The notes beneath the pieces are model-generated. The model ran no database searches and was not told where the DNA came from. It was given only the letters and a program-made list of their open reading frames with translations. The position numbers and the translations under genes are program-made. From positions 3,844,001 to 3,908,000 of the forward strand of contig JAUPSS010000002.1 in assembly GCA_040285825.1 (NCBI GenBank): 64,000 nucleotides of DNA, given 5' to 3'. This DNA comes from Eukaryota sp. TZLM1-RC. Lineage: Eukaryota; Protista; Metamonada: BaSk clade. The number at the start of each line of letters is the position of its first letter. Positions within the stretch are counted from its first letter, which is position 1. Positions 31,001-55,057 of the stretch are shown here, in pieces.

Positions 31001-31931
31001 GTTCTTCTACTCAATCGGACCATTCAGCTCAAACAACCCTCTTAAATCCACTCTCTTTCTTGAACAATGGAAATAGCAACATAAATAATCAGATTAATGT
31101 AATAAATAATACAGAAAGAGATTTATGCAACCGAACAGGTAACACTGCTCCTTGTATAAACCACAACAGATCCCAGCAGCCTCAGTTTTTAGAACTTCAG
31201 GTAAGAATTAACAGTACAGTCATAAAAGGCATGATAGATACAGCTGCATATTGTTCTGTCATTTCCCTAGACCTAGCAAATCTGTGTTCAATGTCCATCA
31301 ATGAAAACGACATCACACAATTCATCCCTGCTAGTAACGTATCGACCAATTCGCTTGGAAGTGCACAAGGCATTTTGACGTTCAATGTTGGTAGCATCGC
31401 GAACCAAGTTTCAATAAATCATACTCTCCCCATAATCCCGGGTTCAAACAAATTTTTATTGGGGTAGACATGTTACAACAACTTGGGTTATTGACATCTG
31501 ACCGTTTAGTAATTGTACTAGACGAAGAGCGCCGCACTTTACTAAATGCTGAAACCGAATTTGATAACAAAATTAAAACTCACCAAATCGGTCATGTAGA
31601 ATCTATTCCCAGCAGTGAAGAAGATTTTACCCAGCAATTAGATAGATCTGGATGTGAGATTAAATTAGATGATAGTGAGTATAATAAGAGTTTGTCTGAT
31701 ATATTAGCTCAATACAAGGACGTATTCAGCGAAACGCCCAATAAAGAAGGCATCGATTGTCCACCCATGTCAATCCCCTTTTATAATCCTGACGCTATTG
31801 TACATAAACCAGCAAGGGGTCTCAACCCAAAGAAATTACAAATAGCTAACCAAATTTTTGACGAATTAATCGAAATGGGCTATGCAATTGAATCGAACTA
31901 TAAATTCAGTTCCCCTATTGTATTAGTAATA
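27985..31931 (+). mobile_element. 5' half of young Ty3/Gypsy element B (LTR, gag, protease, start of RT)
   Basis: LTR 27985-28090 preceded by TSD gaag; gag ATG at 28075; CCHC knuckle CTFCQIRGHIITEC; RGG tract; aspartic protease IDTAA...IGVD (1-nt frameshift near 31455); RT start ending at FSSPIVLVI. Confidence 0.95.
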
Positions 31932-32771
31932 TTCACAATCCCTTCTTTTCAGGCAGTCAACAACCAACTGTCCAAAGAACACTTCATCAACTCACTTTGA
32001 AGAAGACTCAAGAGCGGTTGAACACGAAGATGCTGGAAGACATGGCTGCAACGTACTGTTTTGGTGAAGGTCTCCCTCTAACGAAAGTTAGTAGTGGAAC
32101 ATTGCTACAAGACTTGATAGATAAATCAGTTGAGCATTTTAAGTTATATGGACAAGTTTTTCAATTACCTTCTTACACCAAATTACAGTCATCTGTGGGA
32201 CCACGAGTGGTCATTAGTGTAAAAGACGGAATTAAAAAACAACTCACCCAACACAAATTGACAGGATTTTGCCTGGCAATAGATGGTTCTGAAGTAAATG
32301 GCAATTCTTTAATCAATTTTTGTTTGATTGCTCCAGGGAAATCAATTTTCTGGAAAGCTGTCGATGCGGAGACCAATCGAAAGAATGAAACATATCTTAC
32401 CAATTTATTTGAAACCACAATGCAAGAAATCGGCCCTGATTTGGTCAATTGTGTGATAACTGATGCAGCTCCAAATTATCTTAATGCTGCCAATAATTTA
32501 TTCAATATGGTAAAAGTCAAAGGACTCAGGTGTTCAATCAGTTTTTGATGAGTTTCTGAATAAATGTTAGGTTTTGTTATCTTATGGTGAATTGAAAAGT
32601 TACCTTACTTGAAGAGGATTTCGTAAATAGAATGTTCTCTATTAAAATGTACAACATGTTTGTCAAACCAAATAATGATGACTCTACTTTATCAAAAAAA
32701 GATTCTTTAAAGTAAAGTTAAGTAAAGTAAAGTAAAGTGCTTAAAGTACTTTACCACTTTAGTTATCCCTA
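31932..32771 (+). mobile_element. 3' half of an internally deleted hAT transposon (DUF659-like transposase segment plus TIR)
   Basis: Frame HNPFFSGSQQPTVQRTL...GLPL...LAIDGS...INF...VITDAAPN...RC; aaagt subterminal repeats; TIR ctttagttatcccta ending at 32771; flank aaaaaaag (reverse complement cttttttt). Confidence 0.88.
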
Positions 32772-32861
32772 AAAAAAAGTATCAAGGAGAAAATCTTCCA
32801 CTTCTCAAAAACTCAAACCCTATAAATTGGTGCAAAAAGGACACTTATTTCATTGTTATAG
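32772..32861 (+). mobile_element. Displaced 3' tail of the Fanzor at 55058-56392 (last codons plus right end)
   Basis: Reads KSIKEKIFHFSKTQTL*, homologous to NDIKEKIVHLTENQSL of the Fanzor copy at 43.5 kb; ends ...aattggtgcaaaaagg...ttgttatag. Confidence 0.8.
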
Positions 32862-32876
32862 ACATCATCTGTTTCA

Positions 32877-33695
32877 ATGATTACGATAGCTCCATTGCCT
32901 ACTATTAACACTTTAGTTTCTAGTCTAAGGAACATCATTGATACTCTCTCTAAACAAGATGCTTCCGATATGGATCTTACAATTTATCATCATGGCTGTT
33001 ATCTAGTGTCTTCTTTTTGCCATTTACACCTAGTGGATGAACTCAGGTATTGTTTTGTAACACTTGGTCTCCGTTCACTTCCCCATATTGCAGCTACACA
33101 ACATCTGTCTGTTCTACAAGATCTATTCTCCCTTGCCACACCTCCCCAAGGCAGTAGGATGGTAATTCCTATAGCTGGATACATTATTGATCTCTTACAC
33201 AACTTTTCTCTTCCTCTATCTGTCCGATCTGACGCAATCTCTCTCTTAACTAACTTTCTAGCTGCGTTTTCTACATCCCCTAGCTTTGTTGATTTCGCCA
33301 CTCCCATTTCTATCCATTTGGACAAGGTAATTGAACTAGTCAATCAAAATCCAGATTACAATCCAAACCATTTCCTTGTTGATCTTGAAAAACTCTCTGA
33401 TGCTCTCCAGCTCTCACTCTCTTTGATTTCATCTCAACTTTCAGATGCCCCCACCACACTTGATATTTCTACAGCCATCTTATGGGAAGAAACCCTACGA
33501 AGGAAAGGGGAAACTCCTCTTGAAATGCTGGCTTCTGGAGAAGGTGACGTGGCGATGAAGGGACTCAGGGCTTTGAAGAAGAGTAAAAGAAAAGAACATG
33601 AAAGAAAACTTGCTGAGAAGAGGTTTATGAAAGAACAAGAAGCAAAAATTCCAAAGGTGGCAACTGTTAACGCGAGCAATTCTGGTTGGGATTAG
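32877..33695 (+). CDS. Hypothetical protein (272 aa, helical, charged C-terminus)
   Basis: Clean ATG-to-stop ORF followed by a T-rich 3' UTR; no family recognised. Confidence 0.75.
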   Translation: MITIAPLPTINTLVSSLRNIIDTLSKQDASDMDLTIYHHGCYLVSSFCHLHLVDELRYCFVTLGLRSLPHIAATQHLSVLQDLFSLATPPQGSRMVIPIAGYIIDLLHNFSLPLSVRSDAISLLTNFLAAFSTSPSFVDFATPISIHLDKVIELVNQNPDYNPNHFLVDLEKLSDALQLSLSLISSQLSDAPTTLDISTAILWEETLRRKGETPLEMLASGEGDVAMKGLRALKKSKRKEHERKLAEKRFMKEQEAKIPKVATVNASNSGWD

Positions 33696-34581
33696 TCTGG
33701 TTGTTGCTTTTTATTTAGTTTTATTCTAGTCAAGGTTTTTTTCATTTTTCATTTTTTTATTTAAACCAAACTTGTTTCATTTCAAAAATAAACAGTTTAT
33801 CTGTTTTGTATTGACATCTTTTAGCCACCTTTGAGTTAGTTGAATTAAATCAATCTCAACACTGGTAGTTTATAAGCTTCACATGTTTGAAAAGTAAAAA
33901 TCTCATCTTATTAAGCGGAATTAATGTAAAGCGGAATTAATGGTAATAAAGAATGTACAACCACTTTTGATTGTTGTGCCATTTATTCTCAACAAAAATT
34001 GAAAGAATAATTGAATTTATGAAAAGTCAACAAACCAAAGAAAAAGTATCAACAATTTATTCAATTCACCATCAACTGGTTGTCATCATGTTCAATTAAA
34101 TAGAAGAGTTATATATGTGCAGTAATGCTTTATTGAGGACTTTTTAGAGACTTCTTTGGTCAATGAATTCTGTTCTATCATTTTTAATCCTAGTTCAACA
34201 GCTAAATCCTAGTTAAAGTTCAATACTTTCACTAATCCAGTTGCACTTTAATATAACACTCTGTCCGCTCTGCAAGTAACACTACTAAACACAAGCAGCA
34301 CTGATTACAATAACAAATGAAAATCAATGAGTGAATCATTTTCAACTGGTCTAATGGCTGTTTAGTCTATACAATTTTAACAATTTATTTAATAATGTAC
34401 ACTCTACTAATAAGATATTGTCTGAGTGGACACAGTGATTTCAATCAATTAATTCCTGTTACCAAGCATCTAAAAATTCAAATTATTTCCTAAATTTATA
34501 GGGCAAAGTAATTGCAATAATGTGTGGTATTTACAGTGCAAACACAAGACTATTTACAAACTAGAAACAAAAACTAACCCC

Positions 34582-35907
34582 TCACCTTGTACGACTGGAC
34601 ATCGACTGAACTACAGATTGAGCTATAAAAGCCGCCTGATTCTCATCAAATGCTTCCTCGTACAATGCCCTGGCAGCTGGTTGAGGGGGAGAGCTGCTCG
34701 CAAGAGGAGTGACTCCGTAATGGGAGAAAAGCTGAGATCCATATTTTTTCTTCAAAGTTGTAAATCGCAAATGAATCTGCTTATCTGTTCTATTTGGAAC
34801 ATAACGCGAGACTTCGGACCATCTGCCTTCTCCAATGACAGCAACGGCTCTGATTAGTTGAGAGTCCTCAGCAGCTTCCCAGCGTCCCTTTCTGATGTTA
34901 GGCTATGGTTAATAACAAGAGCATCACCACATACATTCAAGACCTTTTCCCAATGTCGGAGACACTGCTGGTCTGTTCTTCCAGGAACTCTGTGATAAGA
35001 TAACAATTAACAAATCAACACACCTTGCAGCAATTAATTTCCAATTCCCGGCCCCAAACTCAGCAACAGCCTGTCTCAACAAATTATCCTCTTCCCTCGT
35101 CCATGCTCCTTTCTTGCTCCTGCGTCTATCAGAGTCACGTTTAGTTTCTCTTATTTCCACCTGTTCCCCTCGTGCTTTCTGAATAGCAGGCTTTAGTACC
35201 CTTTCATAACGATATCTACACTGACCATCAGTTCTTCTCGGAACTTTAGTCGCCACTTGTTTCCAATTCTCAGTCCCAATTACTCTCACTGCATCTAAAA
35301 GCAGACGATCCTCATTTTCATTCCAATGCCCCTTTTTGATGCTAGGAGACAGGACTCTGTTCCAGTGATCTCTGATGGTTTCTTCTCGCCGGTTCAAAAC
35401 TTGGGCAAGTTTCTTGAATGCAATGTCGTGAGGGTATTGGGCGATGTATTCCAATACTAACTGGTCCTCTTCCTGAGCCCATGTATTTCTTCCTCTAGCA
35501 TGATGTCTATTGGGGGAGTAGAGGGGTTGTTGTTGTAAGACAGGGGAACTCTGCTCTGACACTTCCTGCAATTCAGTGAACAGAGCATTGCTTGGTTGGA
35601 ACTCGGGAAAGGTGCGGACGGAAGGAAGATCGGTGAGGGGGATGTGTTCGGAGGAAAAAGGTTGAGGAGTATCCATAAGGGATCCAAGCAGCGTAGTTAC
35701 TTCGTGGTATAGTTGAGGGGGTAGCAGGGGAAGAAGCTCATTGAAGGGAGCTCGGTGCACTAGAATTGAATAAATCGTTTTTGTAATCTGTTCTATTTGA
35801 CATGCAAGGTTGGGAATGACTGCTAGTGCTTCTTGAACATGGGTAGGTATGGGTTCAGAAGACAAACTTTTACGTCTATCGATCGGATTGATTGGGATTT
35901 CAGCCAT
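34582..35907 (-). CDS. Four-repeat Myb transcription factor, about 419 aa; exons 35024-35907, 34935-34989, 34582-34902
   Basis: Myb repeats NTWAQEED, GHWNENED, GAWTREED and GRWEAAED. Removing two GT-AG introns (34990-35023 and 34903-34934) restores [27 protein letters not shown]. Confidence 0.9.
34903..34934 (-). other. 32-nt spliceosomal intron
   Basis: gtatgtggtgatgctcttgttattaaccatag; TTAAC branch-point-like motif; removal restores the Myb frame. Confidence 0.88.
34990..35023 (-). other. 34-nt spliceosomal intron
   Basis: gtgtgttgatttgttaattgttatcttatcacag; removal restores the Myb frame. Confidence 0.85.
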
Positions 35908-36196
35908 GAGACCTGAAAATGATGAAAACCTTGATGAGAGTTCACAACGGTGAAAGATACCTTGAATGTATCTTGAGCCACAGGGAACGGTAGAGTTAGT
36001 AGGTATCAAAAAGTGTTACTGTAGAAGTTTACAGCATCGTTGCCGTCAGGACAACATAAGTTGACATGATGGTGATGTCAGATGATTGACCAGACAAACA
36101 AGATAGTGATGGGAGAAAGTTAATTTCTAGATAATCAGGAATCAATGCTGTTACCGGCAATCATTCTTTGACTCAGGGAGTTTTCCAGAAGAGTCC

Positions 36197-37510
36197 ATGA
36201 CCCCACTCAAGCAGTTTATTTTAACCCAATGTACCACTGCCACTGACTTTCTCTGCATTCACAACGATAGCCTCAGCCGATTCTACATTGGATATGAGAT
36301 GATGGATCTGCTGTCAACTCCAAGCTCCCTTCTTGAACAAGTCAACGCCTACAATCTCAATTCATTTTTAGGTGACATGCACTATCATCATGACTCACAC
36401 CTTACCACTATTATCCCATCCACTCAACCAAACTCACGACCCTTACTATCCCCTTTTCCGAATTCATTGTCCTTCTCAACTAATACCTCGGTCCCAGAAC
36501 TTTCAGATCTTCAACAATCTTTACTAGAGGTTTCATTGCATGTTCCATTGTGTTCCTTTAAGTTTAAATCATTTGAAACAATTTTTATTAATTTTCCTCG
36601 CCATGAATCAGTTTTAGAGAGGATTTGTTATATTTTGAGGGGTAAACTGTTGGATTTCATTCAACTACAATATAAAGAATCTTGGTTATTATTATCTCAC
36701 CCTGATGTTGCTTTTGATAATAATTTACAAAAGTCTATTATTTCTATTATAAATGATCAAAACCAATTTCTATTTTTAAATTCTGAAATCACCTACATTT
36801 ATCAGCAATTATCACCTCATACTCAATCAATTAAACCAATTGTTATTGGTAAAATAGATGATAATGATTGCCAAAAGAGTTTGATGACACTGGTAGTCAG
36901 GGAGCTAAGTAAATTATTATCAAATAGACCAAATTTTATTCCAATAATCGCTGCTGATGACTCAAAAATTAACCAAAATAAGGCACAATTCATCACCTTT
37001 TTTGATTCTGAAACAGTTATTGCGCAATGTAATGATGATTTAATTTTTGTCAACATTTTAAATAGAATAGAAACACTCATACATAATCAACACTACACTA
37101 CTGTTAGATTAAGTACTCCTTTGCCATTGAATAAATGGTTATCTCAAGCTCACAAAAAGTTTCCTGAATCCTTTAATAGAATGAAGTTTGAAATACTCAA
37201 TTGTAAGAGCTTGATTGTTATTAATGAATCTTTGGTTAGCTTGTTATTACCAGTTGAAGGTTTAATTCCTAGTTTTAAAGATCTCTTGCGCTTGCCATTG
37301 TCTATATGCTCAATTATTAATGAAAAATCGTTTTCAATTTGCAACTGCTTTGCCTTGTGGATTCTTGGAATCATAAGGGCGTGTGATGTTAAATTAAAGG
37401 AAGAACTGGTGTTGAAAATTGTTCAAAATGGAGGAATTGTTAATGGGAAAGGAGTGCAAATTCCCAAAGTCTTGTCTCTTTTACATCGTCCACATAATCT
37501 ATTTAATTAA
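36197..37510 (+). CDS. Hypothetical protein (437 aa)
   Basis: Long ATG ORF, divergent from the Myb gene; no recognised domain. Confidence 0.75.
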   Translation: MTPLKQFILTQCTTATDFLCIHNDSLSRFYIGYEMMDLLSTPSSLLEQVNAYNLNSFLGDMHYHHDSHLTTIIPSTQPNSRPLLSPFPNSLSFSTNTSVPELSDLQQSLLEVSLHVPLCSFKFKSFETIFINFPRHESVLERICYILRGKLLDFIQLQYKESWLLLSHPDVAFDNNLQKSIISIINDQNQFLFLNSEITYIYQQLSPHTQSIKPIVIGKIDDNDCQKSLMTLVVRELSKLLSNRPNFIPIIAADDSKINQNKAQFITFFDSETVIAQCNDDLIFVNILNRIETLIHNQHYTTVRLSTPLPLNKWLSQAHKKFPESFNRMKFEILNCKSLIVINESLVSLLLPVEGLIPSFKDLLRLPLSICSIINEKSFSICNCFALWILGIIRACDVKLKEELVLKIVQNGGIVNGKGVQIPKVLSLLHRPHNLFN

Positions 37511-38399
37511 TAAATATCAAAATAGGATTGGAAGTTGAACTTAAACTACTTAAACTTACATCTGCAAAATATTAATAATACTAATATCTGATTGGCACAA
37601 AATAGAGATTTTGTAAAACCAATACCTCAACATTTGCTGCCGAAGATAAGTAATTTTTCTATATTCCTGGATCTACATCCAATAAATCATCAAAAAAATC
37701 TTGTCCTCAAAGAATTAAAGAATCGAAAAAATTCTAATGCTATGAGAGGAGCACAACATTACAAAAGACGTGGATTATTCTATCAGTATGACAAATTTAA
37801 AAAAGGAAAAGTTTAATAAGTTTTTCTAAATATAATGAATAAATTGAATCAAGTTCAACTACAATTTTTTCCCAAAATACATTGTAATTCTTTCAGGATT
37901 TGAGGCAAATTTTTCGATATCAAGATTTCAACCAAGAATTTAATGAGCATTGTTAATGTCATTAGTGAAAGGAACAACAGATTATATGGTCCTGAGGAGA
38001 ATAACCAATTAGATGGGTTTTCGCATCTAAATGAAAAACAAATCATCTCATCAAAAGCAAGTTTATGTTTTTGGACAATGTTTCACATTGATAGTTTTCT
38101 AGAAGATAAGCAAAATATACTTTTTCACGCTCTACCACTAAAGAAATGCTTTATACCAGTTTATGTCAGAATTGATAAGATTAGCACTTTGCGAATATCA
38201 TCACCATCGCAGAAACAGTCAGCTCAACATTGTTGTGCATTGTTACTCAAGCATCACCAGGTCTTTCATTAATGCACTGTTGTTGTTCAGTCTACACTTA
38301 TTCTTGCAGCTTCAATGTACTTAAAAATTTATAGTTTTCTAGATTGTAGTTTGTTGCTTAGTTTCTTTATTTTTAAAACTGGAATAATTATTGAGATAA

Positions 38400-39590
38400 A
38401 AAACCCATCTAGAATTCAATATCCTCCAAACAAGCGTCACTATTACTGAACCTACTCACAGCATTACGTTCATATTCTACACCAATAGCTAAAAGTGGCT
38501 TTGAAATCATTGTTGGAATAGACTTGAAAATGCAAAAAACAATTCTATTTAACCAGAAAGTGGAGTTCATTGTTTTACCAGACCTATTCAGTAACACTTT
38601 TTTAAAATATTCAAAAAAGTGCAACCCTGAAGGTCCAATATTGCCAAAAAGAGAAATCGCAAACGGCACAAACTGATATTTCACATGTTCTACTCTACCT
38701 AACTGTGCCAAAGGTTCTTCATATTTTTTCATCTTCTTTTTTTCGGCGTTAGATAACGGCGAATCAGCGGAATACACTAAACGAGCAGCAGAATTTTTGC
38801 AAACATCAACTGAGACAAGATCTACAACATTGAGAACACCATCGATCTCTGGAGCTACTAAATCTGCCCTTCTTTTACCAAAGGAATCATAAGTTTGATC
38901 TGAAGTCAGCTTACGTACTAGTGGCTCAATAAATGCCTCTATATTGAAACTTTTGCACATGGCATATAATTGATCACGAACTGAGTCATGAATAAGTGAG
39001 CGATAAGTTATAAAATACTTACAGGTTCAAATATGGGAAAGCGTAACAACACTCTTGCAGCGACAAATTAAATCATTTGGTAATGAACAAGGCCATAGAA
39101 AACATCTCATTCTCATTGCAGTGGTCCATTGGTGATCATTAAGTAGGAGGCCATAAATGGTGGGAATTTGGGAGATTAGGCAACTTGAGCAACTGTCTTC
39201 AAGATCAATCAAAAAGTTTGCAAAAACGGTATTTTTTTCTTTAGCCAAGCTAAGACGTACAATATAATCCAAGTTTTCTAAAACTTTCAAGATTTTTTTC
39301 TGCAATTTTGCAAAAGTCAGTGGTAAGGAGAGCAAGCTTCTTGGAGGAAGTTCCACAATATCAGAGGGGAAACATTTAGCCCAAATATTGGGTGAAAGAG
39401 TTTCAATTTCCTGTTGCAATGAAATAAGATAAGAGCTGCCACAATTTTCAATGAGATGAATTTTTTCAGGAAAACGATTCACAAATTCATAAATATAATT
39501 CTTTCCACCTCCAATAAAGGCAGCTTTACAAAGGTAGCTTAGTTTCTCGGTGAAATAAATCAAAACAATACAACAATGGAGATAACTCAC
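38400..39590 (-). mobile_element. 5'-truncated RLE-type non-LTR retrotransposon fragment (second family)
   Basis: CRC...H knuckle, HDSVRDQLYAMCK, RRADLV, VVDLVSVD, KKMKKY, PFAISLFG; frameshift near 39025. Confidence 0.85.
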
Positions 39591-39690
39591 TCAAAAGCAT
39601 GTCTTTTTTCAAAAATGCACTTTGAAAAAAGCACTATCTTTGGGTGTATCGCTGTCAAAATGAAAATGATTTTTTTGATTTTTTTTCTGC

Positions 39691-39725
39691 TACATTGGAG
39701 CCAAAGGCTTAATCCTTTGTTATAG
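39691..39725 (+). other. Isolated copy of the Fanzor right-end motif upstream of the UPF0193 gene
   Basis: tacattggagccaaaggcttaatcctttgttatag aligns with taaattggtgcaaaaaggacacttatttcattgttatag (32823-32861). Confidence 0.55.
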
Positions 39726-39741
39726 TCAATATCCATCAGAA

Positions 39742-40296
39742 ATGACTAACAAATTCAGCTCTTCAACTCTCTCATTTGTGGACAATTTGTTCTCAAAATC
39801 CAATGTGCCGTCCTCCATGAGAACATCACTCAAAAAGAGTCTTCAGACAGGGGAACCTGCACCTTCGAGACCACGACGACTTCCTCCAACTGACCCTCCT
39901 CTCTTTGGACGTCCATCACTAAGATACATGACAAAGAGAACCAAAGATTGTATCTCCATTCCACCACGTGATGAAGCTCCTCCTGCTCCCGGAATGGATC
40001 GACAGAAGCTTACTCTCAATCTGCAGAACAAGATGGAAGGGGTAAAGATGAACGAGACTCGAACTAATTTTTGTGTGGAAAAGACAATTAATGAGGAAGT
40101 TGATTTATTTACAGAAATAGAAAATGAAATTCAAGAACGATTTGAATTTCTAGTCTCGCTGGACAAGAAAGGACTCTATGAAAATGAAGAAATAATTAAA
40201 CTTCAAATTGTTTCGAAATTAAATGAATTAAAATCACTAAATTTCGATAAATACGTCAAATTACCAAAAAAATGGTTTTCATTTGTTAGATCTTGA
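39742..40296 (+). CDS. UPF0193 (EVG1/C22orf23-like) protein
   Basis: C-terminal DLFTEIENEIQERFEFLVSL...IIKLQIVSKLNELKSL matches my recollection of the UPF0193 motif. Confidence 0.7.
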   Translation: MTNKFSSSTLSFVDNLFSKSNVPSSMRTSLKKSLQTGEPAPSRPRRLPPTDPPLFGRPSLRYMTKRTKDCISIPPRDEAPPAPGMDRQKLTLNLQNKMEGVKMNETRTNFCVEKTINEEVDLFTEIENEIQERFEFLVSLDKKGLYENEEIIKLQIVSKLNELKSLNFDKYVKLPKKWFSFVRS

Positions 40297-41094
40297 ACTT
40301 GATCTTGAACTGAGCTGAGAATGTAAGGTATTTGTCAGAATTCCTGCTAATTTTGGTATTGACGGTCTGTTTTGATTGATTGAATTTTTGATTGATTGAC
40401 CATTGCAAACTAAACTTTCCTCTTTTGGAATTTCTAATTGTTTTATTCCAATTCCCAACTGAGATTTAGATTTGTTTCTTTTAATTAAAAGATTTGGAGT
40501 TTTTTGCAATTTAGGTTCTTTTTCTTCTGTAATAAATGTACTGATTTTTGACCCTTCATTTTGACCTTCTTGACTTTGTTTGACTTTGGGACTTAGTGAT
40601 ATATTCTGATGTAAAGGTGTAAGGTTGGGATTCAACATCGAGAATTTCTTGAGATTTGTGGGGGAATCATCCTTCATGTTATGCTCCGTGGTTCTATCAA
40701 TCGCTGCCGACGTAGGTCTGACGGCTGATCCATGGTGGCTTTCAGTCGGTGAAACTAAGGGCGGCGGAAGGCTGTTGAAGGCAATTTCCTGAATACTGGT
40801 AAGTGAAGCACTAAATGGGCACTTACTACATGTTCTCTGTTTGGTTACAGGGGCAGATTGTGGTCTGAGTTGATTAGAAGAAATAGTAGGTGTATCAGGA
40901 AACATATTAATCTTTAAACGACTTGAATCTGTGGAATATAGATGGTTAAGTTCATTAGAAAAAGAACGACAAGAAGACCTGAGCTTATCTCTTTCTTCAT
41001 TGTCATGTTTTGCATATCGTGAAGAATGTTTGTCAATAAGAGCTTGCAGACGTACAGATTCTGTAAGTTTTTGTGTAACAATTGAGAAAGACAT
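40279..41094 (-). CDS. Hypothetical low-complexity protein (RPxSA motifs)
   Basis: ATG at 41094, ~271-aa ORF; its 3' end overlaps the convergent gene by 18 bp. Confidence 0.7.
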   Translation of the reverse strand: MSFSIVTQKLTESVRLQALIDKHSSRYAKHDNEERDKLRSSCRSFSNELNHLYSTDSSRLKINMFPDTPTISSNQLRPQSAPVTKQRTCSKCPFSASLTSIQEIAFNSLPPPLVSPTESHHGSAVRPTSAAIDRTTEHNMKDDSPTNLKKFSMLNPNLTPLHQNISLSPKVKQSQEGQNEGSKISTFITEEKEPKLQKTPNLLIKRNKSKSQLGIGIKQLEIPKEESLVCNGQSIKNSINQNRPSIPKLAGILTNTLHSQLSSRSSSRSNK

Positions 41095-41265
41095 TGATGA
41101 ATATGCCACAAATGTCAAATAGTACTAAGTAACCTGTTTAATCTCTCAAATATGTCAGTCGTTGAGATTACCGGAATATGAAGATGAATCTAGATCTTTT
41201 CAAAACTTGAGGTCTTTCATTTACTTCAAGATACTTTTCCACAACATGAATCATATTAAGAACAG

Positions 41266-41700
41266 CAAATGAAACTTTGGTACAAAGAAGGAAACTTAAT
41301 CCTGCAAAATATCTGGAATATCTGGATCTGCAGCGAAAGAAAAACATAGAAAATATGACAAAGATATCGAAGAAGGTAATGCTGATAGAAATACACAACT
41401 AGTTTTTTTTGCTTTCCTATTATCGATACACGGAAGACTATCATTAGAAGCAGGAACTTTTTTGAATTATTTTTTAAAATTGGTTCAACAAAAACAATGA
41501 AAAGATTTGATATCCTTTTGTGACGGTCACGAATTCCATTTGCTTTACTTAATAGATTGCCTCAGTTCTTTTATTGAATAAGAGAAAGCATTCGCAAGAA
41601 AACAAGCAGATCAGGATTTTGTAGAGGAAATCTTTGTTCATTGAATTTAGTCCCATTAGTTCTGATTAAATCTTATTAGGTGTTGTCGTTCAATAAATTG
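41266..41700 (+). mobile_element. 3' end fragment of the same RLE non-LTR family as 4990-7920
   Basis: Nucleotide similarity to the ANDTLVHRRKLNP...KHRKYDKDIE...QDFVEEI segment and to the 3' UTR ending gttcaataaa. Confidence 0.85.
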
Positions 41701-41901
41701 AGAATTCTATAGACATCTACACTTCTTGCAAGTGAGTAATCCATGATTATTTAACACTTGAATCATAAAGCTAACCAGGAATTCATATGAAAGCATTCTT
41801 GGTAATAATGGATCAGATATTTTACTAAAAAATAAAAACAATTCAAGCTAAAAACAAATCTTTATTTAAAATACAATAAAATTAATAAAATTATAAGAAA
41901 G

Positions 41902-43440: not shown

Positions 43441-43455
43441 TCTTACAGATATTGT

Positions 43456-44395: not shown

Positions 44396-47300
44396 TTATG
44401 GCTCTTTTTTCAACTCCTCCAATTCAAACGCTGCTTGATACAGAGGATTCGAGAATGGATCCAATCTAGTTGCATTATCCTTCACTAACCTCTTGAAAAA
44501 AAACTTATACCGTTGAAACAAAATTTCAACAAGTGATAAAACAAACCCAACAGCACCAGTAACTCCAGCCGAAGCTCCCAGTGCATTAGAAAAGAATGAT
44601 GCCAGAGTCTCCTTATCTCGAAGTTCAGTAATCAAAACAAACGGAGATTCATCAAAAATAAGCAAGACGGAGAGCCCCGAATTGTAAGCAAAATCAGAAC
44701 TTGAAACCAAGTCACCAAACTCCCGTGATTCAAGATTTAAATGATAGCCAGATTGTTGGGAACTGTCTCGAGAATGATCGATAAATAAACTTTTAATTGC
44801 TTCATACCTAAAAACTGTAGGGTGTGAACCCCTAAACAACATTTGTACTGGGGCATTCAAATGAGAAGACACAACTGAATGACCAAAAGGAAGGCTTGAC
44901 GAGGATGAAACATTGAGATCCAAAGAAAAGGCAAATGCTCGTGGATCGGTTAGTGCAATTTCCAAGGAAGAGTGTACAGAAGTTAGTAGACACTTTTTCA
45001 ACCGAATGTCGATCAAACAATTGCTAGTGTTGGTTCCTGCAACAAAACTAGTGCTGGTTAAAGTTTTTTCACATCTCATAGACGAGAAATCAAGATTTAC
45101 AAAAGAAGAGAGACAAACTCCTTGATAGCCTTGAACTAATAACGAAATATTGGTATTGAATTCGAAATTTTCATCAATCAAAAAGGTTGGCTCCATCGTT
45201 CTAAGGTAAGTATGATTATCAAAAACAAATTGAGTCAACAAAACCGCTACCAGGCCAAGAGTGATGAGGATAAACCAACAAGTGAATAGTCTTCCAAGTT
45301 TGGTTTTTCTTCTAATGATTACACTATCGAGTTCAACATAATGACTTCTTGAAAAAATATCAATCGGCAGAATCTTGCTAGCTCGTTTGCCTAAAATAAA
45401 GGCAAAAACGGTTATTGAGATGGCTAGAAATGAACCAATTGACAAAATTGTGAGAGAAACAGAAGATACTAAACTTACATTATCATCTGGTAGTGAAGGT
45501 TGAAGAGACCCGTACCTACTATAAGAAGACATGTTGCTCATGGGAAAAGTGCTTCCAACTGGACAAAAATCATCCAAATTACAGGGGAAACATTCAAAGG
45601 AACCTCTATATGGTTGATAAGTACCTTCTTCACACGGTATACAAGACTCAATACCAACAGCAGAATAACTAGTTGAGTAAAAACCACGAGGGCATGGTAG
45701 GCAAACAGAGCCAGTTGCAGTAGAAGTACCATAATATCCTGGATCACAAGGTTCACATAGGTTCCCGTTAGAGGAGTTTGTCGTTTGTCTACTTCCTGGC
45801 TGACAGTCAAGGGTACACTCTAATCCTCTAGTGGTGAAATCATTGCAGGTGAATTGTCTTTCAAATAAAGTATTAGTCCCAAAACCATCTATTGAAAGAC
45901 TTGAAGCAACACGAGAGCCACCAAAAACAAAAACAGAATTGCCAATGGCAGCTGTTGAGAATGATAATGATTCAAATAAATGATCATGAAAATATTCAAA
46001 ATTCAAAACTTTAATTGGATCTGTGTCACTAAGTGTTCCTAATTTAAGAAAAGAAATCCTGCCCACATAAGCATCCCACATTACTCCACCAAATAAGAAA
46101 ACATTATCTCCAAATACAATTGGGGTAAAAGAGTTAGTGGGAATGGAAGGTGAAATAAAAACCAACGATTGATTAAACCAAATATTTTCAGTAGAATCGT
46201 CTAAATTGAGTTTGTAAATGTAATCCTGGTTAGCTGTCCATTGACTACTCCTCCCTCCCAACAAAGCCAAATAGCTTGGTTCACCAGCAATGGTGACTAG
46301 GCCACAACTATCCAATGGAGGTGGGATATGGGAAGATGGATGAATATCAATAAGTTTCCATTCTCCAGTGGGTAGGTTTAGAGTGTACAAACTATCGCTC
46401 AATCCACCAGAAGTTTGACCTCCATACACGTATACAAGGTTAAAATGACGTGCACAACAGGAAAAAGCTCGGGGAGTGGGGCGTTCTCCAAACGTTTCCA
46501 AAACAGTCCATTCCGCAGTTAGAGTGTTAAAAACATAGACTTCACTAGTGAGCACTTCGTCAACCCTACCTCCAAAAGAGATTAAACGGCTGCCAAACCC
46601 CAGTAGACAATGTCCTTCCAGAATAGGAGCCACAAAGGAAGAGGTGACTTCTTGAAAGGACCATTGTTGGAAATCAAGATCGAAATAGTAAACACTGGTT
46701 TCTCTTGAACTTGAGGATTGACGAAAACCACCAGTAAAATAAATTTTACTTGCTATGGTAACACTTTGATGTGATGCAACTGAAGGGGGAACAGCAAAGT
46801 GGTCTCCTAGAGTTTGGAAGAAAATCACATCATCATTGGTCCAAAAAGAATCAGTTTCAATCAAAAATAATGTATTCAAGACACCAATATCAAAATAACC
46901 CCCAAAAACAATGATTTGATTGCCGTAAATCACGCTAACTGTTGAATCTACCGCAAATTCTCTAATCTCATTACTCATTTTGTATGATACCCAATACCAT
47001 TGATTAAAATCTAAAGAATTAAAGGTCCTCAATACTTGAATTTTATCTGAACTTTGTTGTTTGTCTCGGAGCCAACCTCCTATTATTATAAAGTTACCAG
47101 AATCATCAAAAAGAGTTGAAGTTAGATAAGTTCCAAATGAACCATTCAGACAAGGAGTTAGATCAATCAAATCCGCTGTAAACGTCATAAGATCAGAATC
47201 ATTTGATTGATTGATGGTAATCAGCCACGTGTCATTTTTATCAGACTGTGTGGCACTAGCAGCTACGTGTGTCCTCCCGGAAAATAACAACACACTAGAT

Positions 47301-47899
47301 TTATGAAAAGGAAGGGTAGCAATGTTTGGGAGTTGCCGAGTAGAAAAGACGTCATCAGAGAGGATAGTGACACTGTGCCACGTGGCAGATTCAAAGTCGA
47401 GTAACCAGATATCAGCCAGAAACCCAGATAAACTTCCACCTGACGTTAGAAAACCATATTCCTTTCCATTAACTTCAATGGTTGTACAAGAAGAACGACG
47501 TCTTCTCCCAGGGGATATTGAAGTTGAAATGGGAGTCCAAACAAACTGTTCATATGCCCATCTGTAGAGCACATCAGAATCAGAGCCAACAGAATCTACA
47601 CCTCCGTATTGAAAAAGATAGGGTCCATGTTTCCAAAGACAACCTTCAGAATGGGGGACATCGGATAAAGATGGCAATTGTTGATAAACATAACTGGTAA
47701 GATTAAGTGTCCAGAGATCTGGTATTGGTGCATTAAACGGGTCAAGACCACCAAAAATGTAAGCAAGATCATCATCGATTACAATTCTAGACAATTGTCG
47801 AGGTGCAGGAGGTGTGCGAGTAGGCGGAATTGATTTCCATGGATCAGCTAATGCAAGAGAAAGTAGCAGATTAGATATAATAAAAAAGCATATCTTCAT
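44396..47899 (-). CDS. Kelch beta-propeller plus Cys-rich (GCC2/ephrin-like) membrane protein
   Basis: Signal peptide, many kelch GG...W repeats, CxPCxxG repeats, three hydrophobic TM segments. Confidence 0.9.
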   Translation of the reverse strand: MKICFFIISNLLLSLALADPWKSIPPTRTPPAPRQLSRIVIDDDLAYIFGGLDPFNAPIPDLWTLNLTSYVYQQLPSLSDVPHSEGCLWKHGPYLFQYGGVDSVGSDSDVLYRWAYEQFVWTPISTSISPGRRRRSSCTTIEVNGKEYGFLTSGGSLSGFLADIWLLDFESATWHSVTILSDDVFSTRQLPNIATLPFHKSSVLLFSGRTHVAASATQSDKNDTWLITINQSNDSDLMTFTADLIDLTPCLNGSFGTYLTSTLFDDSGNFIIIGGWLRDKQQSSDKIQVLRTFNSLDFNQWYWVSYKMSNEIREFAVDSTVSVIYGNQIIVFGGYFDIGVLNTLFLIETDSFWTNDDVIFFQTLGDHFAVPPSVASHQSVTIASKIYFTGGFRQSSSSRETSVYYFDLDFQQWSFQEVTSSFVAPILEGHCLLGFGSRLISFGGRVDEVLTSEVYVFNTLTAEWTVLETFGERPTPRAFSCCARHFNLVYVYGGQTSGGLSDSLYTLNLPTGEWKLIDIHPSSHIPPPLDSCGLVTIAGEPSYLALLGGRSSQWTANQDYIYKLNLDDSTENIWFNQSLVFISPSIPTNSFTPIVFGDNVFLFGGVMWDAYVGRISFLKLGTLSDTDPIKVLNFEYFHDHLFESLSFSTAAIGNSVFVFGGSRVASSLSIDGFGTNTLFERQFTCNDFTTRGLECTLDCQPGSRQTTNSSNGNLCEPCDPGYYGTSTATGSVCLPCPRGFYSTSYSAVGIESCIPCEEGTYQPYRGSFECFPCNLDDFCPVGSTFPMSNMSSYSRYGSLQPSLPDDNVSLVSSVSLTILSIGSFLAISITVFAFILGKRASKILPIDIFSRSHYVELDSVIIRRKTKLGRLFTCWFILITLGLVAVLLTQFVFDNHTYLRTMEPTFLIDENFEFNTNISLLVQGYQGVCLSSFVNLDFSSMRCEKTLTSTSFVAGTNTSNCLIDIRLKKCLLTSVHSSLEIALTDPRAFAFSLDLNVSSSSSLPFGHSVVSSHLNAPVQMLFRGSHPTVFRYEAIKSLFIDHSRDSSQQSGYHLNLESREFGDLVSSSDFAYNSGLSVLLIFDESPFVLITELRDKETLASFFSNALGASAGVTGAVGFVLSLVEILFQRYKFFFKRLVKDNATRLDPFSNPLYQAAFELEELKKEP

Positions 47900-47949
47900 G
47901 TATCAAAATAACCAGAGATTTTGTACTGTGATATTCACTTATCATACAT

Positions 47950-48175
47950 TCCCCTGTGAAATTCACTCCTGTTTTCAACTTTCTCAATGTCTACTCACAG
48001 GCTGTAAGAGACATGTAGCGTCATTTGACAAAGACAATCATGATTTTCATCAATGGGCTACCTCACTTAAATACACCTACTGCTTTCACAGAACAAAGCC
48101 TCGTGACTTGATGTATCTAAGTGGATCTACCAAATGCTACTAAGGTATTTGTAGATCGGTCTCAGAAGTTTTAGT
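47950..48175 (-). ncRNA. Putative Fanzor omegaRNA scaffold (four consecutive hairpins)
   Basis: Stems at 48124-48157, 48064-48123 (14 bp with two G-U pairs), 48015-48061 and 47987-48014, immediately 3' of the Fanzor ORF; G-U pairs favour the minus strand. Confidence 0.7.
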
Positions 48176-48198
48176 TTCTGTATGCTCAGGTTCCCCAT

Positions 48199-48780
48199 TC
48201 ATCTCCTCAACAGAGCTTCTGTGCAAATGTATCTTTCCGGCCACAATTCCGCTTTTTTCTTAATTTGAATATTTTTTGCAGCGGAAATATCTCTGTCATA
48301 TACTATTTGACACTCAGTACAAATATGCATCTGCCATGATCCTGCTTGAATATTCTCGGCCTCGCAACAACTTGACAGTTTGCTTGTATTAAATTCACTG
48401 GTTGACAAGCGCCTCACGTCCTTTTGATAACACAACCATTTTCTGAAAGCTCTTGCTGATCCATATCGATTGACTTTTCGGCAATGAGAAGGGAAATTAG
48501 CAGAACCCACAGCAAGATAGAGTTTATCAGGATGTCCTGCCAGCCTTTGAAATTTGTTGAGAGTCTCTCTGACCCGTCTCTCTTTTCGTCTGCGGTTATC
48601 AAATTTAATTATTTTCCATTTCTGGCGATTACTTTCCAAATACACTTTCCTCCTGACCAAATTCCAATGGTTCAAATATTGGTTGAAATTTTGAACGGAA
48701 TATTGGTTGGGAGAGTGTTTACTGGGTGAAGTATTTGTCCTGTACCTCCTGCCAGTTGGACAAGGAATAACTCCAATCTA
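48199..48780 (-). pseudogene. 5'-truncated Fanzor/TnpB-like nuclease (second family)
   Basis: LAVGSANF, RuvC-II SEFNTSK, zinc finger CC...CTEC, RuvC-III DRDISAAKNI; RuvC-I is missing. Confidence 0.85.
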
Positions 48781-48919
48781 TCATTGTCTGATTGTATTAG
48801 ATTTGATTCCTAATAATTAGAGTGAAAGTTAAGCAAACTTTTGTCTGATTTGACCAACCTAGGGTCAACCTACGGTCTTTTGACCAACCTATCAATGTGT
48901 CGGATGGTTCGTTCACACA

Positions 48920-49551
48920 CAGGAATGACTAAAGTGATAAAGTACTTTAGTCACTTTACTTTAACTCTTTTTTTCAATAAATTGATGACTTCTATGCACT
49001 TCTGACGATACTCTAGGACAACCTCAAACATCAGTTAGATATTGTGACTACTTTTTTGAACACAGAAGATGAAAAAAGTACATTTACTCAGAAACTCATC
49101 AAAAACTGATTGGAAACTACATGTAAACACTTGGTACACAAGATAATTGCGTAAATCTGCAACCTTTCGGCCGTTGATGGTGTCAGCAGACCCTATTTGG
49201 TTGCATACTGGTACTGGCCTTTTAGGGAAGAGGTCAGGTATATAGTGTCCTTCCATTGCCCAACGATTTACCGAATAAGTTTCATGGCAAAGCACTGAAA
49301 GCGCGCACAAGTTTTTGAAAGCACTTCGTTAAGCCTACAGTCATTTGTCCATGCCTCACAAGGAAGTGAAATCATCAGATGCAAAGTTTGTAACACAAAA
49401 AAATGAAGAGAAAATAAGGGGGAGGAAAGATTGGGAGCTGTCACTACTTTATTTCACTTTAAGCAACTTTACTGCATAAAGTATAAAGAATAAAATAAAG
49501 CAGCAATAAAGCACTTGAATTTCATATTTTGGACCAATTTAGTCATCCCTG
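48920..49551 (-). mobile_element. Non-autonomous hAT element (632 bp) retaining the BED-finger N-terminus
   Basis: TIRs caggaatgactaaa / tttagtcatccctg; perfect 8-bp TSD ttcacaca (48912-48919 and 49552-49559); internal sequence homologous to 54600-55057. Confidence 0.93.
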
Positions 49552-51477
49552 TTCACACATATGTTCACATAGTCAGTAAAATTTATATTATTTTACAGAA
49601 ACATAACTGACGAACTTTATGAAGCTATCACTTTGCTCAAATAGATTAGGGAGGCGACATTGTTAAAAAAGGGTCTTGTAACACACTTTCTGCCTTCGGC
49701 TTCACAGGATCTTGGTCTTACAGGGTTTTTACCCATTGAAGGGGTTCAGTGTCCTTACGTTTAAGTTGTTTTTTTTTGGTTTTTGATTGCAAAAAATTAA
49801 ACACAAAATCATGAGTCAACGTATCTCACATTCATTTTGTCCTTTTGTTTTTGAATGTTAAATTATATACCAATGGAGGCAGTATTAATATTCCATCTCG
49901 GCTGCCATACAAATTTCACCATTTGGCTTGGGGACTTCCTTCCCAGAATCGTCTTGAGCGAAGTGTTCTTCTTCACCGTTTGAAACAATTCCCATTTATG
50001 GAAAGTTTTTATTGCACCTTCCGGTCCATAAATTGATTGTAGCGTTTTCTGCAATTTTCCGTTAGAGACTTTCTTAAACTTGTTGAAGAGACATTGGATC
50101 AGAAGTAAAAAGTTGTGGAACAATTTCGGTGTACACCAATTAATGAGCCAAATTTAAGTTGGTTGAACCGAGATAATTTGGATTTCTACCACTGTCGTTG
50201 TGAATGCAAAAATATCTTGCACAAAATGGGTCAACATAGTCAAGGGATGACGTAGTACAGGAATGGAAAAGCAGAAATCTAATGATATTTCTTCATTGGA
50301 GCAGTGAATTTAGTAAACACTCCACATTTGTTTTCTTTATTTCAGTTGTTAAACATCTTAGAATGACCATTCTCAAACTTTGGCAATCGCGAAACCGCAT
50401 ATCACAAGGACTGTTTTGCTCAGCAAGAAATGATGATGAAGTAATTGTTTATGATGAAAGTTTTTTTTGATTATGTTTGAGTACAAACAAGTAAAAATAT
50501 AATTTATTTTATTCATAATTTATTTCTTCAGATTTTGAAACCAAAGCTAATTTAAATTAATTCTTTTCCCATTTTTGATGCAGTTGCAAAGCCGTCACCG
50601 CATTATCTTCACTACTTTCAATGCAACTTTCTTTACCTTCCTTATGTCACATATTTTCAATTCTTCGGCAAATCAGAGACTTAAAGATTGTAGCAAGTTT
50701 TTCAATAGATGTTGGGTAATTTTCTAAATGAAAAAGGTTTAAATTGGATAAATGTATTATTTGATGAGCCTATTGATATAAAATCTTGTGCATATATTGA
50801 AAGAATTGAATCACCAAAATTGCCAAATTTAAAAATCTTTAGCATCGAGTAATTCCCCCCATTTCATGCTACCGCTTGGTGATCGGCAACAACGCTGTTT
50901 AATGCATTTTCTAGAACAAATCGATAGAGTTGCAACTCGCTACATGACTAACTACAATTGCAGCATAATTGTCCATCAAAGATGAGGATTCACTTAAACA
51001 ACCACCTTGTCACAAAGTAGGCCTTACAGAAAGTCATCACAAACCATTTTAACCAAAACCTCAACATTGTGAAACACGTTATGTTGTTAGAATACCATTC
51101 CCAAAACTTGACAGAGCAAGTCAACATCTTCACTTTTGAGATGCTTTTCATAATTTTGTATTAGAGTCAAACTGACAGTTGCTTTTAGTAATTAGTGAGA
51201 AATCACCTCTAGCAACTAATTAACCATTCAATTCCACAAAACTGTGACTGTAATTTCAAACACTATGCATCTTCAACATTGTTAAATTTTTGTTTGTTCT
51301 ATTGTGATCATTGTTCTAAATGTTTGATTTTATGTTAAACCATTTAAACAAACCAAAAACCAAAATTGAGCAAACAACTAGTGTGTAGAACATTTATACC
51401 TTTTTCAGATGATTAGTGGTGTTTTCAAGAATTTATGATATCCTTCGCCTATTTCATGACATATATTTCATGTCTTC

Positions 51478-51583
51478 TGTTGCCGTTGGGCATTATGCTA
51501 GCTGGATGTAAAGAGAGTTAAGATAAAGTTAATTTTATTAAATGTCATTCTATATAAAGGTACTCACTAGTGAGATACCTACA
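51478..51583 (-). repeat. 3' LTR of element B
   Basis: 106/106 identical to 27985-28090 on the opposite strand. Confidence 0.95.
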
Positions 51584-54437
51584 CTACCTTCTCCCGTTTC
51601 GTTAATTAAAATTACTTACTATTGTTGTTCCGCTTCCTTTGCGGATATCGCTTTTGTCGAGGCACGGGGAGAGCCTGAGACGAGCTATTGGATATATTAG
51701 CTTTGCGTTTTCTTTTATTTGGCTTACTAATAAATCGCTTATACGCTTCTGAATAACTGATCGAATGGAGTGGTTCCTCGGTAGTTTCTCCACCAAACCA
51801 TTTCACAGTACAGAAGGGTCCCTGAGATGTTTTATATTCCTCAAGGATTTCTTCGATGACATGTTTACCTGAATCGGTGGCTGCGATTGCCCTGAGTAAA
51901 TCAACATCGTTAGGATCGTCAGCGTTGTATATTTTGCAGTCCCTCTTTGATACATTTGTCTCATAACCAGTCGTCAGGTTCCTAACTGTCAATGTGGAAT
52001 TGGATGGGATTTCTATAATTAAAAATGGGCCTAACCAAGATCCATGCAATTTGCTGTTTTGCTTAGCTTTTCGAAGAATATAGTCACCAATATTAAATGT
52101 GGTTTCTGTATTATTATTAATATTATTCTGATTGGGTTTGTTCAATAATTGGTGGTTCTCTGCTTCCTCCCATTTCTTTTGGAGACGATCAGTTTTAAGT
52201 TTGAGGTCTTGTAAAAGTGGGACATTGGATTCAAAATCGAATATGCCGCCAAGGATGTTAGCAGGGTTTGATCTAGGGCTGATATATGACCCGAAAATCA
52301 ATTCATAGGGGGTGTGGTTTGTGATTCTGCTTTTGGTTGAGTTAATTAATAACTGTGTAATTGGGACATATGTGGACCAAGCATCATAGTCGTTGTAATC
52401 TATTAATAATCTTCTTATACATTGAATTACATCCCTATGTTTCCTTTCTACCAATCCATTACTTTCAGAGTGATATGGAATTGAATTTGTGACTCCAATT
52501 GACATTCTCTGGCATAGCAATTTGAATGTTTCATTGGCGAACTCTGGGCCATTATCACTATGTATAGCCATAGGTATGCCGAATATTGCACAGATATTCC
52601 AAATTAATGCATCTGCCACTTCTAAAGCATTGAGTCCTCTCAGTGGCACTAGTATTGTATATCTAGTGAAACTGTCGACGAAAACTAATAAGTATTTATT
52701 ATCATTATTATCTTTATTCAGAGGTCCAATTGTGTCTACATTTAGTTTAGCAAATGGACGATTTGCCCACAGTGAGCCCGTTGAGGGAGTCTTTGATTGT
52801 TTTGTGGGGGCTGTTTTCTGACAAGTAGGACATTTTTCGATGTGTTTGATGACGTCTTTTCTCATGTTTGGCCAGTAAAAATCACTTTTGGAAAGCTTGT
52901 GAAGACTTTGGTTTTTGCTTGGGTGGCCTGATTGTGTTAATCCGTGTATTAAATTGAGTGCAGTTTTTCTTAGTTTGGTCGGTATTATCATTTTATTATT
53001 ATTATTAAGCCAGATTTCTGTGTTTCTGCAGAGTGTGGCGTTTTTGAATAATGGATCGTTATTGCTAATGGCCAGTTGTTGTTCTGCTCTTACTTTGGAT
53101 AACCAATTTGAAAAGATTGCTAAATCTGGGTGTCTTGATAATTCGAGAATGTGGATTGGTTCTGGACTTTCATAGTCGGAATCGTCATCTGGGGGTGGAA
53201 TTTCACCGTGCCAGTAAGGATCGTGTGGGTGACTGATGTGATTTAATTCTGGTATTACTGAATTGTCATCAATGTTTCGTGACATCATGTCTGCCCAGTG
53301 ATTGTCTTCTCCTTTCTCATGTACTATATCAAAATCAAATTCTGATAAAATAGGTAACCATCTTTTGACTATTTTGTTCTTTTCTGGAGCTGTGGCGAGG
53401 AACGCAATATTTCTATGGTCGGTGAATATGGTCAAGTGTCGAGTGATGAGGAAGCTTTCTAAATGGCTTTCTGTTAGTATTAATAATATTGCGTATAGTT
53501 CCTTTTGTAATGTTGACCAACGTTTTTGAGTATCAGTTAATATTCTACTGTAAAAAAAGATTGGTTTTACTTTTCTATCTTTTAATGCAGTTCCCATGGG
53601 TGCATATGGTTCGACCTTTTGCCAGATAACTCCTCCTACTGCGATGTCTGATGCATCGGTGCTTATTAAAATGCGTTTGTCTGGTGATGGTAATTCCAGA
53701 GGCATATGATTAATGATTAATTCTTTTATTTGTTCTAATAGTTGGTCGTGTTTGGTTTCCCAGTTGACACGGCGTTGTTTGTGTTTGATTAATTCGTTTA
53801 TGGGTGCAATTAGTTGTGAAATGTTTGGGAGCCAGTCTCTGATGAAATTGACTGAGCCGACTAATGACCGAACTTCTTTTATTGTTTTTGGAGCAGGGAT
53901 GTTAATTAAAGCATCGACTCGTTTTTGACTAATTTTACGTTGTTTATATTGGAAAGTGCTGCCTAAAATGTCAATTGGTTGTTTGTCAGTAACGAATTTA
54001 CATTTTTTCAATCCAATGTTGACTCTTCTATCCCTTGCGCATTGCAGTACCCTTTGAATTCTTTCTAAAAATTGTTGAAGGGTTGATCCAATTATGATTA
54101 TGTCATCAATGTATGTGAACACTCCGTCTATCTGAAAAATTTCCATCATAACATTTTGAAAAATTGCTGGGGTATTCTTTAATCCGAAACATGCCCTTTT
54201 AAACATGATGGATCTGCCAGGGATAGAGATGGATGTCTTTTCAATATCCTCGTCAGCGACTTTCATCTGCCAAAAAGCTTTTGGAAGGTCCAAAGTGGCG
54301 ATGTAGTTGGCTTGACTTAGAAATTCCAAAACATCTGAAATTAATGGTAAGTTAGACTCAACTGGAATAGTAAGAGCGTTAACACCATCTTTACCGCTGA
54401 AATCGCCTGTCAACCTCGGTTTTCGATCATCAGGGTA
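51478..54437 (-). mobile_element. 3' half of Gypsy element B (RT, RNase H, integrase, chromo-like domain, PPT, 3' LTR), inverted
   Basis: Open frame YPDDRKPRLTGDF...LDLPKAFWQ...FGLKN...YIDD...TDASD...DH...GHP...CPTCQ...DNGPEF...ESNGLVE...VIEEIL..VKWFG; PPT gaaacgggagaaggtag; LTR 51478-51583; TSD gaag. Confidence 0.95.
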
Positions 54438-55057
54438 ATCATTGATGGAGTTGATGGATTCTGTGGTGTAGAAGGAGTTGATGGAGTTGATGGATTCTGT
54501 GGTGTAGAAGGAGTTGATGGAGTCTGTGGTGTAAAAGGAGTAAGTGGAGAAGGACTTGAAAAGGACGGAAGTGCTTGTCTAGGAGCTGGACTATTGATAC
54601 TGGAAGCTCGTCTTTTGCGTTGTCTAGAATGTGTAGCTAGATACACTCGTAAGTCTGCAACCTTCTTACCATTGTTACTCTCAGGACACCCTATTTGGTT
54701 GCATAACGGTACCTGTCTTTTAGGTAGTAGGTCAGGTACATAATGCCCTTCCATTGCCCATCGGTTGACAGAATAGACCTCATCGCATAATAGACATTGA
54801 AAGCGCGCACAAGTCTTTGAAACAACTTCGTTGACTTGACAGACATTCGTCCAAGCCTCACAAGGGAGTGAAGTCATTAACAAAAGAAAATATATAAGAA
54901 AAATGAAGTGAGAAAGGGGTGGAGAGTAAAGAAAGAAGCGTTCACTACTTTATACCACTTTAGCCAATTTTAGAGCTTAAAGCTTAAAGTTTAAAGTAAA
55001 GCTTAAAGTAAATAAAGTACTTTAATTTCATTTTTTGGACCACTTTAGTCATCCCTG
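54438..55057 (-). mobile_element. 5' half of the split hAT transposon (TIR plus BED zinc-finger N-terminus)
   Basis: TIR cagggatgactaaag at 55043-55057; W...CLLC...H...C BED-like finger; TP/SP repeats; flank cttttttc matches the other end at 7 of 8 positions. Confidence 0.88.

Follow-up and report, generated by a model that had tools for sequence, protein, structure and literature searches.

The window analyzed here, a 64,000-nt stretch of DNA (JAUPSS010000002.1:3844001-3908000 of assembly GCA_040285825.1, on a contig of 3,948,580 nt in total), comes from Eukaryota sp. TZLM1-RC, a name also carried by the relatives of its proteins. We take this strain to be Skoliomonas litria, a free-living anaerobic metamonad, and note that the strain name is absent from the S. 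litria genome paper. The window harbors a Ty3/Gypsy retrotransposon and a hAT DNA transposon, each of which is present as two halves located at the opposite ends of a piece of 22,506 nt (31932-54437). We consider it likely that this piece was recently inverted in a single event, in which two breaks, one in the Gypsy reverse transcriptase (RT) and the other in the hAT transposase, were repaired by end joining. The evidence comes from comparing the two elements, half by half, with sister copies in the same assembly, which served as the native reference: L001 on JAUPSS010000001.1 for the Gypsy element, and the loci L005 and L006 for the hAT element.

The left half of the Gypsy element (27985-31931, + strand) begins with a 106-nt long terminal repeat (LTR) of the form TG...CA (27985-28090), preceded by a GAAG target-site duplication (TSD; 27981-27984, read directly on the + strand). 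It continues with a gag/protease frame of 1,130 codons (28075-31467) and, after a 1-nt frame change, with the start of pol from 31470 on the same strand, ending in SSPIVLVI; the ATG of gag (28075) lies inside the LTR. The right half (51478-54437, - strand) opens with YPDDRKPRLTGDF at 54437, the start of 941 stop-free codons that reach 51615, and its Pfam matches follow the Ty3/Gypsy pol order, namely RVT_1, RT_RNaseH, Integrase_H2C2 and rve, covering RT, RNase H and integrase. These are followed by the polypurine tract GGGAGAAGGTAG, the 3' LTR (51478-51583) and the second copy of GAAG, read on the - strand (51474-51477). The two LTRs are unusually short and are 100% identical, with GAAG on each flank; they are presently inverted with respect to each other and, just as the original prediction stated, become direct repeats with a GAAG TSD once 31932-54437 is flipped.

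The same flip was said to rejoin the two parts of the RT (31931 with 54437 on the minus strand), and this is what the relatives of the element bear out. Namely, the last I of SSPIVLVI and the first Y of the right piece align with neighboring residues in some 20 unbroken relatives, which come from this species and from two sister species and whose conserved local protein reads ...FSSPIVLVI|YPD..KPRLTGDF. At the level of DNA, the native sequence of L001, GTATTAGTAATA|TACCCTGATGAT, runs without a gap through GTAATA|TACCCTG at L001 10702|10703, which is the window up to 31931 joined straight to the reverse complement of 54437 and onward. L001 9819-10702 is 98.3% identical to the 5' half and ends at the same base, and L001 10703-10798 together with 19900-20438 is 98.5-99% identical to the 3' half. 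Judged by this comparison, no Gypsy base is lost at the break and none is gained. The L001 copy is itself 5'-truncated and is interrupted 96 nt past the point that matches the window break; the interruption (10799-19899, approximately 9.1 kb) includes a 950-aa RVT_1 gene. At the gag/pol boundary (31440-31470), the window copy is without one A, at 31457, that L001 and some of the read contigs have. The protease and the RT of L001 share a single continuous frame (...PGSNKFLIGLDMLQQLGLL...), while the window copy frameshifts and meets a stop at 31465-31467; the A was either lost in a deletion that is private to this copy and inactivates it, or it is missing through an error left in the assembly. 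Just left of this young element, 120-nt direct repeats that are 93% identical (24100-24219 and 27452-27571) enclose an older, decayed Gypsy-type remnant (25276-26311), whose identity to the RT region of the split copy is 65-68%.

The hAT element is divided in a corresponding manner. Its 5' part (54438-55057, - strand) carries the 5' terminal inverted repeat (TIR) at 55057 and the transposase N-terminus from an ATG at 54877, while its 3' part (31932-32770, + strand) carries the DUF659 region, a deletion at approximately 32538 and the 3' TIR ending at 32770. Read on the + strand, the ends at 32770 and 55057 both give ...CCACTTTAGT(T/C)ATCCCT(A/G), a shared polarity that is impossible for an intact element. 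Flipping 31932-54437 makes these ends inverted, with TSD copies that agree in seven of eight positions (CTTTTTTT versus CTTTTTTC), as had been predicted; one copy lies at 32771-32778 (AAAAAAAG; CTTTTTTT when read on the opposite strand) and the other at 55058-55065. In L005 and L006 the ends are inverted and the 8-bp TSDs are perfect. What is more, the CAGGGATGACTAAAGTGG... ends and the perfect 8-bp duplications of these two loci are shared by a smaller, non-autonomous relative inside the window (48921-49551; 631 nt, TSD TTCACACA), which is 75% identical to the split copy.

The internal sequence of the hAT element leads to the same join. The 5' part, read from 55057 to 54438, is 99.7% identical to L005 and L006 3821-4401. 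The 3' part matches L005 4404-5010 over 31932-32538, with 99.5% identity, and L005 6149-6435 over the rest of its length. The native DNA reads ...CCATCAACGAT|TCACAATCCC..., including CAACGAT|TCACAAT in L005 and L006, and the native protein reads ...PSTPST-IHNPFF... in both of these loci and in the 703-aa transposase P0228. The predicted in-frame union of the two halves is, therefore, exact in all three native references; the one element of that claim in need of amendment is the M of PSTPSM, which stems from a C>T change at 54441, private to this copy, by which the last T of PSTPST became M. This change is at a CpG, 3 nt from the break, and a private 36-nt tandem duplication (array 54442-54523), corresponding to 12 residues of the PST-rich linker, ends 4 nt from the break. 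Large missing segments at the joins in intact family copies, which the original prediction had named as refuting, are not seen: L001, L005 and L006 lack nothing at either join.

Compared with the full-length element of 2,615 nt in L005, the split hAT is an internally deleted derivative of 1,459 nt. The deletion (L005 5011-6148) is private and lies about 600 nt from the join, which implies that the element was already a 1,459-nt non-autonomous copy before it was split. In particular, it retains only DUF659 among Pfam transposase domains and is, for this reason, considered non-autonomous, while the full-length P0228 has DUF659 and a faint match to Dimer_Tnp_hAT. The family comprises 11 annotated proteins at 90% identity or above in this genome according to a cluster look-up, P0228 included, and a library-wide search with the 206-aa hAT piece returned only relatives from sister species at 42-49% identity that are colinear to within approximately 12 residues.

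A third, independent structure is the Fanzor-type tail into which the hAT element had inserted. Its last codons and right end lie at 32772-32831 (+ strand; 80% reverse-complement match to 43460-43520), and its body lies at 55058-55406 (- strand) and extends to the right past 55406, with a 78-92% direct match to 43515-43935. The window itself provides an empty-site control, namely a paralogous tail without a hAT insertion (43460-43935, - strand), which is colinear with the reverse complement of 32772-32831 followed by 55063-55406. The split protein, ...VDKGSKKK / KKSIKEKIF..., or more fully ...YLQRAKVDKGSKKK / KKSIKEKIF..., faces ...VDESSKNDIKEKIV... and ...YLQRAGVDESSKNDIKEKIV..., respectively, in the paralogue. 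It follows from this uninterrupted copy that the two hAT flanks were formerly contiguous, in agreement with the earlier proposal that the Fanzor C-terminus is rejoined by the flip. Another Fanzor/TnpB-type remnant, a 158-aa frame with a Cas12f1-like TNB domain (48199-48675; Pfam E 3e-8), is found within the inverted segment. A chance origin of the arrangement is excluded, given that a single flip restores three independent structures.

How were the broken ends joined? At junction 1 (31931|31932), Gypsy ...GTAATA is followed by hAT TTCACAAT..., and at junction 2 (54437|54438, read on the - strand) hAT ...CAATGAT is followed by Gypsy TACCCTG.... The bases that fit both partners amount to 2 nt (AT) at the former and 1 nt (T) at the latter. 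Between them, the two junctions account for all bases of both broken elements, and a single T occurs at both; this T could equally be the hAT base L005 4404 or the Gypsy base that comes first after the break. In other words, there is no loss and a net gain of 1 nt, and the original prediction of such a gain, with only a few shared bases, was accurate. No shared repeat was found at the breakpoints in self-BLAST and k-mer scans of the window, and the same scans together with the native comparison found no inverted repeats of one family at both breakpoints. The breakpoints, their reciprocity, the zero loss, the single added nucleotide and the absence of homology are thereby demonstrated. This single-base resolution is owed to the position of both breaks in young transposons, for which near-identical sister copies exist.

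Reciprocal joins, zero loss, one added nucleotide and an overlap of 1-2 nt are the signature of two breaks ligated without resection, and the earlier preference for end joining of two breaks over homologous recombination is thus upheld. The ancestral locus would have carried a complete Ty3/Gypsy element of 6,907 nt on the + strand and, approximately 18.6 kb to its right, a non-autonomous hAT of 1.46 kb lodged in a Fanzor-type tail. The Gypsy RT would then have suffered a double-strand break after 31931 and the hAT transposase another in its linker, and end joining would have religated the 22,506-nt segment between them in reverse. One break would have been blunt; the other would have been blunt as well or would have had a stagger of 1 nt that was filled in. 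There would have been no resection in either case, such that one T:A pair ended up at both junctions. We infer from these features that the repair pathway was similar to classical nonhomologous end joining (NHEJ) and that the two breaks were simultaneous. One could argue that the 1-2 nt of microhomology at each join reflect replication-based template switching, of the type known as fork stalling and template switching or microhomology-mediated break-induced replication (FoSTeS/MMBIR), rather than ligation of broken ends. However, overlaps of this length are at the chance level, and template switching usually leaves duplications, deletions or insertions behind, while the joins seen here are the reciprocal of one another, nothing being lost and just 1 nt gained. 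We therefore regard template switching as very unlikely.

The position of the breaks bears on another possibility, namely that they were made by a nuclease encoded by a transposon, be it the hAT transposase (acting at cryptic sites or by alternative transposition), the Gypsy integrase or a guide-matched Fanzor. Both breaks do lie in transposons, Fanzor elements are numerous and flank the hAT element, and a 1-nt stagger would be compatible with a nuclease cut. That said, the breaks lie 620 nt (hAT) and approximately 3.9 kb (Gypsy) inside the elements, away from the TIRs and the LTR ends, and no new 8-bp or 4-bp duplication is present at the joins, which together argue against alternative transposition of hAT as well as against integrase action. 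As for a guide, the window contains no match of 12 nt or more to the half-sites at the breakpoints, only chance 11-mers, and this speaks against a guide-matched cut. Altogether, an origin of the breaks in a transposon nuclease appears highly improbable. The most specific version of this idea, in which programmable Fanzor nucleases cut transposon sequence and the inversion results incidentally from mobile elements in conflict with one another in a Fanzor-crowded genome, strikes us as more improbable still.

Inversions by NHEJ of two breaks arise after paired nuclease cuts, and natural cases in Drosophila have been explained by the staggered-breaks model. The inversion described here resembles these in its reciprocal junctions, its homology of at most 1-2 nt, its absent or minimal loss and a short sequence present at both junctions, as fill-in of a staggered break predicts. 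It differs in its host, a metamonad whose end-joining machinery is uncharacterized, and in its duplication, which at 1 nt is the smallest possible, whereas those of staggered-break inversions in flies often span tens to thousands of bases. Inversions produced by ectopic recombination between inverted transposons likewise have transposons at both breakpoints and swapped or split TSDs, but here the two elements, an LTR retrotransposon and a DNA transposon, are unrelated and share no homology at the break, which makes homologous recombination impossible as the mechanism. Finally, alternative or reversed-ends transposition of hAT elements (Ac/Ds) also places a hAT at one breakpoint and yields inversions of comparable size. 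In contrast, Ac/Ds alternative transposition breaks at the termini and creates a new 8-bp duplication, while the present break is 620 nt inside the element and has none. The type of rearrangement is, in this sense, known and ordinary, and it is documented here with unusual precision. The locus is a natural record of double-strand break repair in a little-studied anaerobic flagellate, a repair in which no ends would have been resected, no homology used and 1 nt filled in. This record suggests that classical end joining is active here, in a group in which some members are thought to be without it. Ku70/80 and ligase IV are not mentioned in the genome paper (PMC11316075), and a search of the proteome for them was not made.

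Read data from a single sample were available as the Logan contigs of three runs, at k-mer depths of approximately 2-8 and with 36% and 22% of the sampled words present. These contigs tile 29100-32737. Those that reach junction 1 stop at 31932 and then continue with 7, 133 or 128 unlike letters, and one begins at 31931, preceded by 32 unlike letters. Near the junction they carry sister letters rather than those of the window, namely those of L001 at 31791 (A) and 31570 (G) and that of L005 at 32063 (A), which indicates that they derive from sister copies and are silent on this locus. We had considered the contigs that stop at the junction as support for the unflipped form and rejected them as such, as they bear the letters of L001 and L005. 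A related reading holds that the inversion is real but unfixed, being confined to one haplotype or to a subclone of the culture, with the unflipped form coexisting. The event is young, and the same sample does contain contigs with native continuation through both breakpoints. These contigs, however, carry letters private to the sister copies (the hAT family alone has 11 members), and the host genes lie on a single contig for which no alternative haplotig was found. Coexistence of the two forms is, in our estimate, fairly unlikely.

Two observations weigh against the inversion as we describe it. No read or independent contig could be shown to span either junction, the Logan contigs being of low depth and masked by the sister copies; and the locus is present in one assembly only, with the host genes (such as 32877-33692) matching just GCA_040285825.1 in protein look-ups. 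Exact-protein look-ups with the open reading frames across junction 1, across junction 2 and in gag gave no match. Could the inversion, then, be an artefact, with the true order unflipped and the segment inverted by the assembly pipeline? The S. litria genome was assembled with ABruijn from just 41x of MinION data and corrected with Nanopolish and with Illumina reads via Unicycler (PMC11316075), the Illumina data of the species amounting to about 206x and the base calling being of the 2018 era; moreover, junction 1 is not bridged by the contigs of the available runs, and a second assembly with this locus is lacking. On the other hand, the breakpoints contain no repeat that could mislead a repeat graph and there is no gap of Ns, while the failure of contigs to bridge the junction is explained by the sister copies. 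Reciprocal junctions that account for every base are unlike the products of chimeric reads or repeat-graph errors. Namely, base-exact reciprocity with zero loss and a gain of 1 nt would require that two chimeric joins arose independently at the same positions. For these reasons, we consider a misassembly unlikely.

If the inversion of 31932-54437 is real, as we think, when did it occur? The original prediction called it young on the basis of the identical LTRs. The LTRs are only 106 nt long and are, because of this, weak evidence for the date: with zero differences, the 95% upper bound on their divergence is 2.8%. Youth itself is nevertheless supported from elsewhere. Namely, the stop-free Gypsy reading frame of 6,675 nt sets a 95% bound of approximately 0.9% on neutral divergence, and the hAT halves differ from their sisters at 2-3 sites each (99.5-99.7% identity). 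Both of these suggest that the inversion is recent, and it is later than the insertion of both transposons.

The host part of the inverted piece (32832-51473) contains, in addition to the Fanzor remnants and the small hAT derivative, eight annotated genes, encoding proteins of 272, 419 (Myb), 437, 183, 184 (UPF0193), 271, 512 (DM10) and 1,167 aa (Kelch/attractin-like); the earlier count of seven was thus one short of the public annotation. No host gene is broken by the inversion. What the flip does is to put the 272-aa gene (32877-33695) downstream of the Gypsy 5' LTR and promoter, on the same strand. There is also a practical consequence for the public annotation, in which two gene models span the junctions and are chimeric, each using a short predicted intron of about 26 nt. 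The first (28075-32000; 1,299 aa) combines gag and the start of the RT with out-of-frame hAT sequence, and the second (54877-51612; 1,079 aa) combines the hAT N-terminus with Gypsy pol. The stretch of approximately 1.9 kb that separates the small hAT copy from the Gypsy 3' LTR (49552-51477) lacks open frames of at least 90 aa as well as Rfam and tRNA matches, and in the window as a whole Rfam and tRNA scans found no RNA genes.

To the left of the Gypsy elements, two further regions of the window are rich in tandem repeats. The first is an intron-free frame of 5,044 codons (8028-23162, - strand), for which the annotation gives a protein of 4,313 aa with Ephrin_rec_like repeats; the frame contains eight tandem repeats of 531 nt (11799-15815) that are 92-96% identical. 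The second lies at the very start of the window (1-4303), where long arrays of 84-nt and 21-nt tandem units are located within the open frames 70-897 and 881-4303; judging by their sequence, this suggests that these frames encode a highly repetitive protein.

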